A DNA stretch of 64,000 nucleotides from Phyllobates terribilis (lineage: Eukaryota): positions 1,168,886,001 to 1,168,950,000 of the forward strand of contig NW_027362761.1 of assembly GCF_046119375.1 (NCBI RefSeq). Reading direction: 5' to 3'. The notes under the pieces are model-generated. The model did not search any database, was not told the DNA's origin, and worked only from the letters and a program-made list of their open reading frames with translations. Positions within the stretch are counted from its first letter, which is position 1, and the number at the start of each line of letters is the position of its first letter. Below, piece by piece: positions 21,104 to 39,100 of the stretch. The translations under genes and the position numbers were made by a program.

Positions 21104-21389
21104 GGTGCGGAGTGCGAGCTCTGAGGCCACCGCTCTCAGCCACACGTGTAGGACCCGGAAGCGGAATATTCCACTGAGCAACCAGGATGGGGGTGGCAAT
21201 GTGGACGGGGTAGCGGAACCTCAATGCCACCCGCTGCGCTGTATGTTACTGCAGTGTATAATCTGCACATTACCGCATATCTGTGTGTTCTGTAATAGGA
21301 CGACGCCGGGATACAGGATGCAGCTCGGTATAACATAAGAGCGGCTCCCCCTTTCTTGTTGGTACAGTCCGGTCGCGGACCCTGACAAC
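21104..21389. promoter_or_regulatory. Bidirectional promoter between the POLR1A and MRPL35 start codons (286 bp)
   Basis: Divergent ATGs at 21103 (-) and 21390 (+). GC/CpG-rich, with E-box CACGTG at 21143-21148 and tandem ETS/GABP-type CCGGAAGCGGAA at 21155-21166. Confidence 0.8.
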
Positions 21390-24300
21390 ATGGCGCTGTC
21401 CTGCGGGCCGCTGCGGGCTGTCTGTGCCCGGACCAGACCACTGCTCAGGTAAGGGGAGGACGGTGTGGGGAGCAGAGTGGGGGAATGGTGATTGGGGTGT
21501 GAGGACAAGATCATCTCCTGTGTGGGGGGCCGAGACGTGGTGGGAGCCATCACCTCTGCTGGAGGGCACAGCTTGTGTGCAGCCAGCAATATGGTGGTGC
21601 CAGGCTTCCTCAGACCTGTTGTCCTCCATTATATCCACCTTGTATTAGGTTGGGTAATCTGTGCTTTCTGGGACTTGTAGTAACCCAGTATCTGGAGCTA
21701 GACTCTGAACCAACAGGGAGATTTCAGCTCTGAAGCCTACACCATGGTGAATGCAGCTGTCTAACATGATCCCTACCATTGTGCTAGGGTGTGTAACAGA
21801 AAAACATACTCTGGAGTGACAGGTACATGCATTGTGCTTGGTGATGTAAGGCTGCACACGGCTCCTGGCGTGGTCGCGGTGTTTCACACAAGATCATATT
21901 TACTGTAGATTAGTCGGACAAGCGACTTCTTCCTGCCTCCTGCCCTGTAGACAGGTCACTTCATTGTGCTTGGTGATATACGGCTGCACGCAGCTGCTCA
22001 GCCATGAAGCTCCCGGTGGGGGCGTAGTGTTTCACACAAGATCATACTTACTGTAGACTAGTCGGACAGGCGACTGCTTGCTGCCCTGTAGACAGTTCTC
22101 TTCATTGTGCTTGGTGATATACTTCTGCACGCAGCTGCCCAGCCATGAAGCTCCTGGCGGGGGTGCAGTGTTTCACACAAGATCATATGTACTGTAGACT
22201 AGTCGGACAGGCGGCTCCTGCCTGCCTGCTGCCCTGTAGACAGGTCCCTTCATTGTGCTTGGTGATATACAGCTGTACGCAGCTGCTCAGCCATGAAGCT
22301 CCTGGCAGGGGCGCAGTGTTTCACACAAGATCATACTTACTGTAGATTAGTCGGACAGGCGACTTCTCCCTGCCTTCTGCCTTGTAGTGACAGGTCCCTG
22401 CATTGTGCTTGGTGATGTACGGCTGCTCGGCAATGAATCTCCTGGCGGGGCGCAGTGCTTCGGCCTTGTTACCTCAATATCTGTCTGTTCTCTTATTTAC
22501 ACTCCTCAACAATGAATTATTGGTTGTCTGAAGAAGGTCCTACAGCGCTGAATGCACTTGGGCATGAAAATCATCAAGATCCACTGCTGGCAGCTCCTGT
22601 GTAATCACCGACCAATGACGTCCCAGACTGCTCACAGTAGGACGAGGAACATGCAGTCTGGCGACGTGATGGAAAAATGGCCGCACCACTGGTCCCACCA
22701 CCAAACCAATGTAACGCCGAGCTGGAGACTAGAGGGGTCCGGCCACCCCACACCATAATCCCATTGCAGTTCCCTATGAGATCCCCAGGGTTCTGCTGCT
22801 GTTGATGGAGCTTTTGTGATTCCTCCCCAGCAGCTCGGTGACTGTTTCTGAGTAGTAATAAGACGTTTTTTTCTATGTTGCACAAAGAGAAAACAAAGTT
22901 ATTTTACATTATTTTTTCCTTGACATTTTTATTTATTTTTTTCTTTGCAGACAATGGCCAGGAACGTTCTTCCCGCAGTCTGGAGCGGGCACCGCAGGTA
23001 GGTGGTGATGGCTGATTTGGTGGCGCTGCAGTAATTGTCATCTGTCTTCAATAAAACGAAAGTTGTAGGGGAGTGACCTCCAACATGGCCGTCATCACAG
23101 TCTTTTGTATCAGTCACGTTTATTTTCGTCTTCCTTTTTGTCATTAGTTCTGCTGAGGCCGCTGGTAAATCCGTGTATGCCCAGTAACATACGGCGCGTG
23201 TCCGCATTGTGCTCCACGCAGAGCGTCCTCCGACCAGCAGCGCGTGCACCAGCCCCTGCCCAGAGCAGCGCCATTCTCAGCAGGTCAGTGGGCATTTCCC
23301 TGCTGTTCGTGTTGTATGGTGTTATAAAGGTTCTCCATGGATCTGTGAGCAGATTTTACACTGCAAACTGTATACATTATTAAATAAATCTAGACCTGAT
23401 GAGACTGGTGTACTTACTCCGATAATTTGTTAGAATGACTGTATAACCCTTTTTGAAAGTTTAGACTCATTCTATGTCGACCTAGCTTGATTGACAGCTT
23501 TTAGGTGTCCCTCTTCCCTGCTGCTGAACCCAAAAAGCCTCCTTGACCACTCCTCAGTGTCCCTTTTCCCTGCTGCCGAACTGCCACCCAATACACACTT
23601 GGAAGTATTATTATCAGAATTGTATAGTATTTCAGACATGGATTTTCACAGTAAGTACACCAGCCTCATCTTCTCCATTCAAAGCAGCGAATGCTGAGTT
23701 AGAAATGACAACATTTGTATACAGTCATGACAATGCTCTTTGAGCTCCAAACTGATACATGCTGTTCACTGAAGTTTATGGATTGGGGAGCAGACAGACA
23801 CAGAGTGCCACACTGAGAGGCTGCTGCTCCAATTAAAGGGGTTGTGCCATTTCAATTAATTTTCTACCCTTTTTGCAGTTTGCCTTCCCTAGGTCTACCG
23901 GTAAGTCTCCGCCGCTGGCAGCGTTAAAGTCATGTCGACAGCGCAGTAACCAGTCAGTGAGCTTAGCTCCAGCCACATGGGCAGAGATGCTGAGCTCACT
24001 GATTGTTTGCCGTGCTGTGCAAGGTGACATCATCACCGCAGCCAGTGCCAATCAGTGAGCTCCGTGTCTCTGCCCCATGTGGATGGAACGCCCCTTCAGA
24101 GCCGCTGAGCTCACTGATTGGTCGCTGCGCTGTTGACATGATTTCAACGCTGTCACCCACTAGCTGAGCGGCAACTGAAACCTAAGTCATATATATATAT
24201 ATATATATTTATATTAAAAAAAAAAGTAAATATTTTTTGCACTTGGAGACTCACCAGTAGACCAAAGAAGAACAGTACATTTTTATATATTTTTTTCTTA

Positions 24301-36133: not shown

Positions 36134-39100
36134 ATGGCGCTGCCCTGTGTGAGGCTGGGAGCTGTACGGTTCTGTACAGGGACACTGCTCAGGTAGTATA
36201 TAGGGGGAAGGGGCCGTGTATGTGGCGCAGTGTGGACTGAGTGTCCGAGACAAGGACGTATAGGGGCAGTGATGTGTGCGGACATGTGCACAACACATGC
36301 TTCTGTCCTATGTCCTTACAGGATCCTCCAAGTCATAGAGAGGGAGGGAGAGAGAGTCTGCAGTCACACAGAGAGCGAGCGAGCGAGTCTGCAGTCACAT
36401 GTGACACCTCTTCTCGGAAGCCCTTGTCTTTACCCTGGGAGATGGGGGGCTCGGAGTCGGGTCCTGTGATGGAGAGATGGGGTGCAGCCGTGGCCCGGAC
36501 TCGACCCGTGCTCAGGGCCGTCACAATTTAAAAAGGGTGGTATGGGCTTAACAAGGTTGAGTGGCTGATTACGACTATGCCACCTGTGGCACCTGGTGAA
36601 GGCCACCAGCGAGTTGGAGTATCTGCTCACTACACCGCTGACTCCTCCTCTGCGCTTCAGCCCGGGTCTCCCGGGGGAAGCCCATCAGGTCCCCCCCTGG
36701 TTGTCCCAGGCCCACTCCTCAGCCTCCGGCCAGGTGACTGTTGGTGCGGGTAGCGGTGTCATTAGGGGTTGCTGCGGGTCCTCTGCAAGCGTGGACCAGT
36801 CCGGGTTGGAGCCGGTGGACACCTCTGCAGCTTCAGGCACTTCGGGAGTAGGGTGGCATCGCAGGTCCCCACCTATAGCTGCCGCTTGCAGCTCCGGAGC
36901 AAAGACCTGCTGCCAGGTGACCGCGCCGGACAGGAGATACTCGGCCATGAGGTCCAGGATAGAAACGGTAGGCTCAGCAGCCGGGGCAGGGGTTGCACAC
37001 TCACCCGCCGCTGGGCCGCTCGCGACCTCTGTGACCGTGTCTCCTGGGGCTTCAGCTCCTTGGCGGCGGGCCCGGATGCGCAGCAACATTTCTTCCCGCC
37101 ACGCAGCCGTCGCCGCCTCCTGGGCTTTTCTGTCTCCGCACGAGTCCCGGGGCTTCCTGGCGGAGAAACTCGAAATCTCCCGCTGTAAGAACGCTTCCGC
37201 CTTGCTCCCTGCTGGGTGAAGGGCCTGAACCGGGCTCAGAAGGCTCGGTATGTTGCACTCCAGAAGCGTCCATGTCTGCCTCCGAAGATTGCCAACCTCC
37301 GACTGCAATGGCCGCACCTTGTTGCTTTTCTTCTTCCTCCTTTTTATGGGCGGTTCCTGGGCGGCATGCTGACAGGCCCGCCTTCGTTCAGCCCTTCCGG
37401 TTTGACGGGCATTACCCCGCGGACAGTCTCTGATGGAAGGGGCAGTCCACATTTTTGGCGCCAAGCGGGAGCCCAGCCCACGATGGGAGGTGTCAGAAGG
37501 CCATCTTTCCACAGCATTATGGCACCTGTTCTTCTTGGGTGGGCGCCATTTTAAGTGAAAAACGAAAGTCCAAGGTGTAAGGCACACAGTACCCGGTAGC
37601 AATGGGTAATTCCTTCCTTTGCTGCGGGCACGCGATCCTGCCGACTACGCCAGGATTGTGAAGCCTGTTCTCGGAAGCCCTTGTCTTTACCCTGGGAGAT
37701 GGGGGACTCGGAGTCAGGTCCTGTGATGGAGAGATGGGGTGCAGCCGTGGCCCGGACCCGACCCGTGCTCAGGGCCGTCACAATTTAAAAAGGGTGGTGT
37801 GGGCTTATCCGGGTTGAGTGGCTGATTACGACTACGCCACCTGTGGCACCTGGTGAAGGCCACCAGCGCTGCTGCAGTCCGCCAATGCCTGGTGTTATAG
37901 CAGCCGACGTTGTTACTACTCCCCACAGGCGGAGCAGGGCAGAGGGACAGGATGACGGGAGTAGTAGTCTAGGAAGTCTGCAAAGTGCGGTGTAGCGCAG
38001 AATAAAGAGTCCGGAGGCCATAGGGGTGAACTTCCAAGGCTTTACTCACATAAGAGATGGCAGAAGGAAGGCGACTCCCTGCTCCCCGCGGAGTTCTGCG
38101 GTCACCAGAGACGAGGGTCCGACAACCTCCGAGTAAGTCCAGCGTTCAATCAGGACCCCGCACCAGAGTGTTCCTAAAACTACAGACCGAGTACTGTCCT
38201 GTCTGTGTGTGCGTAGGCCGGGTCTCCCTCTGAACTCCTCTCAGAAAAAGGGCACGGGTGGCAGCTCTGCTCTTTCCGTTACCCGGTGGGATCCTCAGGG
38301 CCTACCGGGCTTCCCTGACCAGGACGTGGAGTAGCAAGGTCGGGGGCCGGTACCCCTCTTGCAGCCGGACTCCCTCTGAATATATCAGGTGGCGAGAACA
38401 GGTGGCGTATACCGCTCCCGTCTGCATCCTCCCTGGGATCCATTTGCGGTGGAGCTACACTCTTAAGCTCTGGGCCTTCTTGGTCATGGTCCTTAACCGG
38501 GTTGAGACATTCCTCGTCTGCAACCTACCCCTCGTCCCAAGGCCGGGGTACGAGGGCTGTGTCTCCATCCGCTGCAGGTCCACACAGGATCCACTTTCAG
38601 GGTGGGAGATCACAGTAGATGACAGCCAAAGAACGAAGAGCCAAAATGGCTGTGAATTAAATATGAATTATTAAGTGTCACGAAATGTAAGTCCTCCACC
38701 CTCACCCACTAAATGGTTCCCCTAACTCTTGGTTCCCCAGTCTCCCTGTAACCAGGAGGGCAGCACCTAGTGCATTCTAGCCCCCTCTGGTGGAGAAATG
38801 TGGTGTTGGATGTGAAGGAAGGGTCCTGACCATCACACTGTTCTTACCTCAGAGGAGGAACACTACACTCCATTAAAGAAGTGCAGCATCCCTGTGGCGG
38901 TCGAACCCTCAGGGGCGCCACACACAGAGAGAGAGAGAGAGTCTGCAGTCACACAGCGAGAGAGAGAGTCTGCAGTCACACAGCGAGAGAGAGAGAGTCT
39001 GCAGTCACACAGCGAGAGAGAGAGAGCCTGCAGTCACACAGCGAGAGAGAGAGAGAGTCTGCAGTCACACAGAGAGAGAGAGAGTCTGCAGTCACACAGA

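Follow-up and report, generated by a model that had tools for sequence, protein, structure and literature searches.

Why should two genes that encode unrelated proteins begin with what look like copies of the same first exon? The question is raised by MRPL35 and PTCD3, the genes for the mitochondrial ribosomal proteins bL35m and mS39, which follow POLR1A in a 64-kilobase (kb) stretch of the genome of the frog Phyllobates terribilis; this stretch is referred to below as the window, and all coordinates are positions within it unless another locus is named. An initial annotation of this DNA proposed that both genes start from copies of one promoter and first exon, and that the copy now used by MRPL35 (copy A, next to POLR1A) was captured from PTCD3, which uses copy B. 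The evidence described here makes it probable that the POLR1A/PTCD3 bidirectional promoter and PTCD3 exon 1 were duplicated long ago and that copy A was captured by MRPL35. A literature search found no description of the MRPL35/PTCD3 case.

Two copies of one promoter and first exon

Exons A (21390-21448) and B (36134-36192) lie where the initial annotation had placed them, and each is 59 nucleotides (nt) long and in phase 2, with ATGGCG at the start and CAG/GT at the end. The reported similarity, 41 of 59 nt without gaps and 11 of 20 amino acids (aa) with the split arginine codon included, is reproduced exactly. When either exon is slid along both strands of the whole window the next-best 59-mer matches at no more than 33 of 59 positions, and against this sliding background (mean 14.3, standard deviation [sd] 3.9 matches) the exon A/B pair stands 6.8 sd above. 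The mismatches between the two exons are distributed 8/3/7 over the three codon positions. BlastN searches of the whole window with 221 nt around either exon return the other copy as the only strong match (expect value [E] 9e-8), in an alignment with 68% identity over about 100 nt that includes the leader (TCTTGT..TGGTACAGTCC), the coding sequence (CDS) and the donor.

The leader TGGTACAGTCC, which had been noted in both copies, is indeed common to them (21360-21370 in A, 36111-36121 in B) and lies inside the BlastN alignment. The further homology that had been described for some 70 nt of the intron is not supported: the alignment goes no farther than GTA, and across the first 35 bases of the intron the two copies agree at 12/32. 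Upstream, the ETS-like motifs are where they had been described, CCGGAAG at -235 in copy A (21155-21161) and CCGGAAA at -226 in copy B (35908-35914), and they prove to belong to a larger colinear module consisting of CACGTG or CACATG, CCGGAA.(T/C)GGAA, ACCA and a G-run. A weaker Blast match between 21141-21173 and 35894-35926, on nearly the same diagonal as the exon match, contains these motifs. Reciprocal, cross-species and cross-paralog Blast matches of exon, leader and promoter module, for which the amphibian comparisons are given below, uphold the proposal of two copies of one promoter and first exon; judged by their sequences, exons A and B, each with about 250 base pairs of upstream promoter, are true paralogues.

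The composition of the two exons, with three or four arginines and no aspartate or glutamate, is the Arg-rich and acid-free one that had suggested a presequence, and it is in keeping with that reading, but their helical hydrophobic moment does not exceed that of shuffled sequences. Both exons are putative mitochondrial import signals.

The 3′ half of exon A also has a 24-nt likeness to 36493-36516 (21/24) and to 37750-37773 (20/24), which is not significant (E 0.04-0.26) and probably arises by chance. This exon-A-like stretch is carried by a 212-nt direct repeat in PTCD3 intron 1, whose two copies (36400-36611 and 37657-37868) are 95% identical and 1257 nt apart.

Splicing of copy A into MRPL35 and probable splicing of copy B into PTCD3

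Contigs from four RNA-labelled runs of the same organism place copy A at the head of MRPL35. The junction 21448 to 22951, by which copy A had been proposed to splice in frame into the gene, is present in all four runs, as are the further joints 22997/23148 and 23283/24654, with GT..AG boundaries. Exons of 59 and 47 nt bring the frame back to phase 1 before the exon that begins with LLRPL, and the five spliced exons form an open frame of 191 aa from the exon A ATG, whose product matches the bL35m entry for Phyllobates terribilis (P0169) at 100% identity. The identities of the two called genes are recorded by PF01632 and PF22330 (bL35m and mS39).

For copy B, the expectation that PTCD3 starts there agrees with an annotated 660-aa mS39 CDS that begins at 36134, with an in-frame model that contains exon B, and with the Xenopus laevis CDS, which starts at the orthologous exon. 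A 38-nt exon 2 is needed in the PTCD3 model because the length of the intermediate exon must be 2 modulo 3 to lead from phase 2 to phase 1; its X. laevis homologue has 41 nt (L004:21500-21540; peptide comparison YFCGSARHQAAAA). A later exon (50549-50713) matches mS39 in the PDB (E 2e-5), and the gene extends beyond 62 kb. The splicing of copy B into PTCD3 is thus supported by annotation, reading frame and conservation. In addition, two or three of three sampled words from the exon B stretch 36108-36192 are present in eight RNA-labelled runs, which is a weak substitute for junctions.

A bidirectional promoter shared with POLR1A

The initial annotation had put MRPL35 on the bidirectional promoter of POLR1A, and the transcript ends agree: POLR1A contigs end at 21143-21167 and MRPL35 contigs begin at 21173-21364. 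The POLR1A contigs, of 5285 and 3214 nt, terminate at 21143 and 21167; a gene call for a 1705-aa Rpb1-domain protein terminates at 21103, and POLR1A exon 2 (19480-19683) matches residues 26-83 of human RPA1 (E 1e-26). The minus-strand contig ends, the frame at 21103 and the RPA1-matching next exon establish that POLR1A and MRPL35 are divergent. Their ATG codons (21103 on the minus strand, 21390 on the plus strand) are separated by 287 nt and their transcript ends by 6-220 nt, so that the start sites lie less than 1 kb apart, as expected of a bidirectional promoter pair. The shared E-box/GGAA module may well mediate co-regulation.

In one run (X5) an 836-nt MRPL35 contig begins at 21173, about 190 nt upstream of the start in the other runs (21364) and 6-30 nt from the POLR1A contig ends; this may represent an alternative upstream start or an assembly join.

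The two copies in other amphibians

MRPL35 was sampled with an exon 5 query and then with a Bombina protein query, giving about 35 amphibians and many other vertebrates. N-termini were compared in 27 anuran MRPL35 proteins with a canonical start, amphibian gene order was read from gene calls around MRPL35 in Pelobates, Phyllobates, Nanorana, Bufo, X. laevis and Rhinatrema, and exons and promoters were compared in five sequences from three species (Phyllobates A and B, X. laevis A and B, Nanorana A).

The X. laevis gene order, POLR1A(-) MRPL35(+) PTCD3(+), is that of Phyllobates. Copy A is MRPL35 exon 1 at L004:10001 (MAASCAKFGAFLARPVLLVR, 59 nt) and copy B is PTCD3 exon 1 at L004:19256 (MAAPCVRLGSVRCTGTLLR, 56 nt), and PTCD3 (669 aa) begins 2.6 kb past MRPL35. 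The pair is present in two independent assemblies (L003 and L004) and is therefore no assembly artefact. The leader TGGTACAG(T/C)CC accompanies all three A copies (Phyllobates, Nanorana and Xenopus) as well as Phyllobates copy B; Xenopus copy B reads TGGTTCGGTCC. All five sequences contain the promoter module in the form CAC(G/A)TG, 5-6 bases, CCGGAA.(T/C)GGAA, ACCA and G-run. Phyllobates module A matches the sequence upstream of X. laevis copy B (E 2e-4) and of Nanorana copy A (E 2e-4), and module B matches upstream of X. laevis copy A (9874-9932, E 0.001-0.002). The crosswise searches give the same picture: X. laevis A finds Phyllobates B through both promoter (E 0.002) and exon (E 0.006), X. 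laevis B finds Phyllobates A through the promoter (E 4e-4), and Nanorana A finds Phyllobates B through the exon (E 9e-6).

Exon identity is 44/56 between the B copies of Phyllobates and X. laevis, 48/59 between the A copies of Phyllobates and Nanorana, 41/59 between Phyllobates A and B, and 31/59 between the A copies of Phyllobates and X. laevis, a pattern that fits a slowly evolving copy B close to the ancestral sequence and A copies that diverge independently. An N-terminus of exon A type, MA[LA].C..L.A....R.G.LLR, is present in all 27 of the anuran MRPL35 proteins aligned, and in Discoglossus and Pelobates the first 12 residues of MRPL35 are the same as the first 12 of Phyllobates exon B. 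The second MRPL35 exon also has internal orthologues of 44 nt in Xenopus, Nanorana and Ascaphus (in Ascaphus at L002:8548-8591). POLR1A is head-to-head with MRPL35 in Pelobates, Phyllobates, Nanorana, Bufo and X. laevis and also in the caecilian Rhinatrema. The duplication is not species-specific and is at least as old as the crown frogs; probably it is lissamphibian in age.

There are hints of exchange or of retained ancestry within species. Residue 3 is leucine in both Phyllobates copies and alanine in both Xenopus copies, and the Xenopus copies share 23 of 26 nt around the ATG.

Proposed direction of the capture

In human, POLR1A and PTCD3 form one head-to-head pair, and IMMT and MRPL35 form another. 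The gar order is Mitofilin/IMMT(-) MRPL35(+) REEP-like(-), and in the lizard Podarcis a REEP-like gene (-) again follows MRPL35(+), while POLR1A exon 1 is absent upstream of MRPL35. The human genes of 2p11.2 are listed in the order POLR1A, PTCD3, IMMT, MRPL35, REEP1 (PMC10742694). MRPL35 has four coding exons in gar and lizard, of which the first is short (25 nt, MAATLRRC, in gar; 34 nt, MAALAAARRLP, in lizard), ends in phase 1 and is unrelated to exon A, and the second begins G(L/V)LR... Frog exon 3 uses the acceptor of gar exon 2 in the same phase ('GT TTG CTG AGG CCC CTG GTT' as compared with gar 'TT CTG CTG AGG CCG CTG GTA'). In fish, lungfish, coelacanth, reptile and mammal the MRPL35 protein opens with MAA...G(L)LRPL, its stretch ahead of LLRPL being shorter by about 20 residues.

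These are the features expected of exon capture. The first exon of the recipient, MRPL35, is another one in gar and in lizard, and in gar the gene also has another neighbour; a compatible phase-1 intron precedes the LLRPL exon, and the product is in frame and expressed. The gar order and the eight-codon first exon of gar MRPL35 indicate that the amphibian state is derived, which supports capture of the PTCD3 promoter and exon 1; lizard and human agree with gar in part. Because copy A holds the place that PTCD3 has in human, beside POLR1A, it would be the copy that stayed in place. The proposed direction, from PTCD3 to MRPL35, thus agrees with the short, unrelated first exons of gar and lizard and with the gar and human gene orders, and we infer it from position and outgroup gene structure.

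It is quite unlikely that transfer went the other way, with the exon and promoter originally belonging to MRPL35, or new in amphibians, and PTCD3 receiving the copy. The sequences alone cannot name the donor, since the MRPL35 start of Discoglossus and Pelobates is the exon B start over 12 residues, and a blank PDB profile search with MRPL35 N-termini (below) is compatible with such an origin as well; against it stand the different 8-11-codon start exons of gar and lizard MRPL35, the adjacency of gar MRPL35 to IMMT, the position of copy A beside POLR1A, where PTCD3 lies in human (PMC10742694), and an amphibian MRPL35 N-terminus that exceeds those of fish, lungfish, coelacanth and mammal by about 20 residues. 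Three other searches shed no light on the donor: exon B had no matches among PDB sequences, the N-terminal 40 residues of Discoglossus MRPL35 returned only the query protein itself, and the PTCD3 exon in its 120-aa open frame returned only a partial turtle protein without an N-terminus.

We give somewhat less credit still to the possibility that the two genes behave as one transcription unit, PTCD3 also using exon A by read-through or long-range splicing and exon B being alternative or minor, an arrangement that would recall the nested plant genes with a shared presequence. Both exons being 59 nt and in phase 2, either could join PTCD3 exon 2 (41570) in frame, and the genes lie on the same strand with a gap of 4.4 kb between them. 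However, among the joints and loose ends listed, exon A contigs join 22951 only, with no loose end at 21448; the PTCD3 CDS is annotated from exon B in Phyllobates and from the orthologous exon in X. laevis; exon B, with a module of its own, is better conserved between Xenopus and Phyllobates than exon A; and exon B words occur in the eight RNA-labelled runs. Convergence or chance among Arg-rich presequences with a Kozak ATGGCG, CAG/GT and common E-box and ETS sites is very improbable, for although ATGGCG, CAGGTA and CCGGAAG are common functional motifs, the A/B differences fall on all codon positions and protein-level similarity of presequences is generally unreliable, the match is at the nucleotide level and includes the non-coding leader TGGTACAGTCC as well as equal length and phase, it is far above a window background that holds no second match, the order and spacing of promoter, leader and exon are constant across the five sequences of three species, and the inferred ancestral MRPL35 copy, as in Discoglossus and Pelobates, does not differ from exon B at any of 12 residues.

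Several points nonetheless weigh against capture of copy A from PTCD3 or against parts of that account. Exon B as the ancestral PTCD3 type would have the position beside POLR1A as its one basis, and a profile of the 27 anuran MRPL35 N-termini matched neither mS39 nor bL35m among PDB sequences. The 36192-41570 joint of the PTCD3 model is a predicted one. In Ascaphus neither exon 1 nor POLR1A exon 1 was found in the 8.5 kb upstream of MRPL35 exon 2. No PTCD3 call lies in the 10 kb that follow MRPL35 in Pelobates and Bufo, and in Nanorana the next gene downstream of MRPL35 (L001 26081-27900, minus strand) encodes a 391-aa, RMND5-like CTLH/RING protein, with no PTCD3 exon or second exon copy in the 8 kb between the two. 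The Nanorana order indicates a further lineage rearrangement or a scaffold problem, and the non-adjacent PTCD3 of these three genera may be due to later rearrangements or longer spacers; as a consequence, adjacency of the copies is shown in two species only. Finally, the co-variation of residue 3 may reflect gene conversion or retained ancestry, and conversion would blur the dating.

A possible history

Under the capture of copy A by MRPL35, the POLR1A/PTCD3 bidirectional promoter and PTCD3 exon 1 would have been duplicated in an ancestral amphibian that predates the divergence of Xenopus from the neobatrachians and probably also that of caecilians from frogs. The MRPL35 body, beginning at the LLRPL exon behind its phase-1 intron, would have left its place head-to-head with IMMT and come to lie between copies A and B, its short start exon being replaced by exon A and an exon 2 of 44-47 nt. 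Copy A would have remained beside POLR1A, where it would drive MRPL35 and give the first 20 residues of the N-terminal extension, the small extra exon 2 bringing the gene back to phase 1, and copy B would drive PTCD3 and supply its N-terminus. Since then both copies would have kept the E-box and double-GGAA module, the leader, and an acid-free, Arg-rich exon of 19-20 codons, copy B changing slowly and copy A faster and independently across frog lineages. Three routes fit the structure: a large tandem duplication with later deletions, which the initial annotation had proposed, insertion of the MRPL35 body between the copies of a duplicated target, and template-switching replication.

The origin of MRPL35 exon 2 bears on how much was captured. 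PTCD3 exon 2 and MRPL35 exon 2 agree in phase at both ends and begin alike, with R-(Y/H)(F/Y)(S/C)G; shuffle tests of MRPL35 exon 2 against PTCD3 exon 2, and against exon 1 and the 5′ untranslated region of gar and lizard MRPL35, give scattered results (z -1 to 4), mostly non-significant. A tentative and on balance doubtful extension is that MRPL35 exons 1 and 2 together (35 residues) are a graft of PTCD3 exons 1-2, made by recombination between phase-1 introns in the lissamphibian ancestor, in which case sister presequences and promoters would have persisted for some 300 million years.

Organization of the window

The positions of the exons and promoter modules are collected in Table 1.

Table 1. 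Exons and promoter modules of POLR1A, MRPL35 and PTCD3 in the Phyllobates terribilis window.
Feature	Positions	Strand	Remarks
POLR1A exon 1	21026..21167	-	CDS 21103-21026 (26 residues); 5′ end ~21143-21167
Promoter module, copy A	21141..21195	+	CACGTG 21143-21148, CCGGAAGCGGAA 21155-21166, ACCA, G-run; shared with POLR1A
MRPL35 exon 1 (copy A)	21361..21448	+	Leader TGGTACAGTCC, CDS 21390-21448 (20 residues), phase 2; contigs from 21364 in runs X1 and X3
MRPL35 exon 2	22951..22997	+	47 nt, 15 residues, ends in phase 1; amphibian-specific internal exon; joints on both sides in four runs
MRPL35 exon 3	23148..23283	+	Starts (V)LLRPLVN; corresponds to exon 2 of the gar/lizard gene, same phase-1 acceptor; RNA joints
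MRPL35 exon 4	24654..24798	+	Joint 23283 to 24654; reads continue after 24799 into exon 5 sequence
MRPL35 exon 5	31582..31770	+	Through the stop; conserved bL35 C-terminus; run-on sequence maps here; PDB human bL35m, E 5e-36
Promoter module, copy B	35888..35948	+	CACATG 35894-35899, CCGGAAATGGAA 35908-35919, ACCA, G-run
PTCD3 exon 1 (copy B)	36111..36192	+	Leader TGGTACAGTCC 36111-36121, CDS 36134-36192 (20 residues), phase 2
PTCD3 exon 2 (predicted)	41570..41607	+	38 nt; AG..GT sites; in-frame model
PTCD3 exons 3-6	43684-43720, 43991-44036, 44126-44194, 44630-44734	+	In-frame model, canonical splice sites; TBlastN/BlastN matches to the X. laevis PTCD3 locus

Some other features of the three genes are worth recording. 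The ATG in MRPL35 exon 2 was considered as an ancestral start of the gene and rejected; it is out of frame, with a stop after 27 codons, it is missing from exon 2 of Ascaphus and Xenopus, and the ATG of Nanorana lies elsewhere and in frame, leaving the idea of an ancestral start unsupported. In MRPL35 intron 1 the sequence CTGGGACTTGTAGTAACCCAGTA occurs at 21668-21690, and its opposite strand reads ACTACAAGTCCCAG, which we take to resemble an ACTACA-type ZNF143 site. In MRPL35 intron 4 the summed contig depth at 24900-26890 reaches thousands in all four runs, with many variant contigs, and most likely reflects an abundant transcribed repeat family and not a part of MRPL35.

POLR1A intron 1 (16517-21014, minus-strand frames) contains two tandem arrays, one with a unit of about 86 nt (~19.8-21.0 kb) and one with a G-rich unit (~16.5-19.4 kb). 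The stop-free frames that the two arrays generate together, as long as 1108 codons, engulf the true exon 2, and these giant open reading frames are spurious. Farther along, at 6540-10170 on the minus strand, open reading frames of 770, 316 and 235 aa with a YLDDLL motif of reverse-transcriptase type and an ADFLSR motif look like the pol region of a retrotransposon in a POLR1A intron. Three more tandem-repeat arrays lie in PTCD3 introns (57000-57600, 58440-59190 and 60230-61370), each of them open in all three phases over 170-290 codons. An Rfam scan of the 64-kb window gave no matches.

Relation to known systems

The closest parallels to the proposed capture are in the acquisition of presequences, from other nuclear genes and through exon shuffling, by plant genes that derive from the organelle. 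The presequences of rice rps11 derive from atp2 and coxVb, and rps14 is nested in sdhB in rice and maize. In conifers, sdh3 has an hsp-derived presequence (PMC8317393). In those cases, as here, one mitochondrial-protein gene has come to use the 5′ exon that codes for the targeting sequence of another, the join is intron-mediated and in frame, and donor and recipient copies are still recognisably homologous. MRPL35 differs in that it did not come recently from the organelle: an old nuclear gene, it already possessed a promoter, a start exon and a long transit peptide, and these were replaced or extended; moreover the exon brought its promoter with it, the donor gene lies next to the recipient, both encode mitoribosome proteins, the host is a vertebrate, and the role in import is predicted. 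In nested genes of the plant kind one exon is spliced to two gene bodies; here there are two separate exon copies, and among the joints listed exon A contigs join MRPL35 exon 2 only.

In having POLR1A and MRPL35 on opposite strands and flanking an E-box and GGAA-pair module, the locus resembles other housekeeping bidirectional promoters of vertebrates. It differs from the human POLR1A/PTCD3 promoter in that the partner has been exchanged, MRPL35 for PTCD3, and a second, one-direction module serves the displaced PTCD3 downstream. Chimeric genes formed by segmental duplication and partial deletion likewise show a duplicated 5′ module and a fusion inside introns that agree in phase, and there too the chimera persists alongside the parental function, but in the present case there is no extra gene copy, the single MRPL35 having itself become the chimera and having long been fixed across a vertebrate class.

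What is new, and well supported, is the recognition of the promoters and first exons as paralogues and of amphibian MRPL35 as a chimera with a changed bidirectional partner. Both genes were already correctly annotated, and no general principle is changed. The locus nonetheless appears to offer a datable case in which an established vertebrate nuclear gene for a mitochondrial protein gave up its promoter and the beginning of its targeting sequence in favour of a copy of its neighbour's, and the exon capture would account for an amphibian bL35m that is about 20 residues longer and has five coding exons, not four. It suggests that unrelated proteins can exchange the outermost N-terminal part of a long transit peptide, and that a bidirectional promoter can switch partners, with a duplicate continuing to serve the gene that was displaced. 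The shared E-box and GGAA module provides a testable regulatory link between two mitoribosomal subunit genes and RNA polymerase I. If the graft of PTCD3 exons 1-2 were true, a large-subunit and a small-subunit protein would have sister presequences and sister promoters, one of them shared with RNA polymerase I, and if gene conversion between the copies has also continued, the locus would constitute a natural long-term experiment on the interchangeability of presequences and on coupled subunit dosage.

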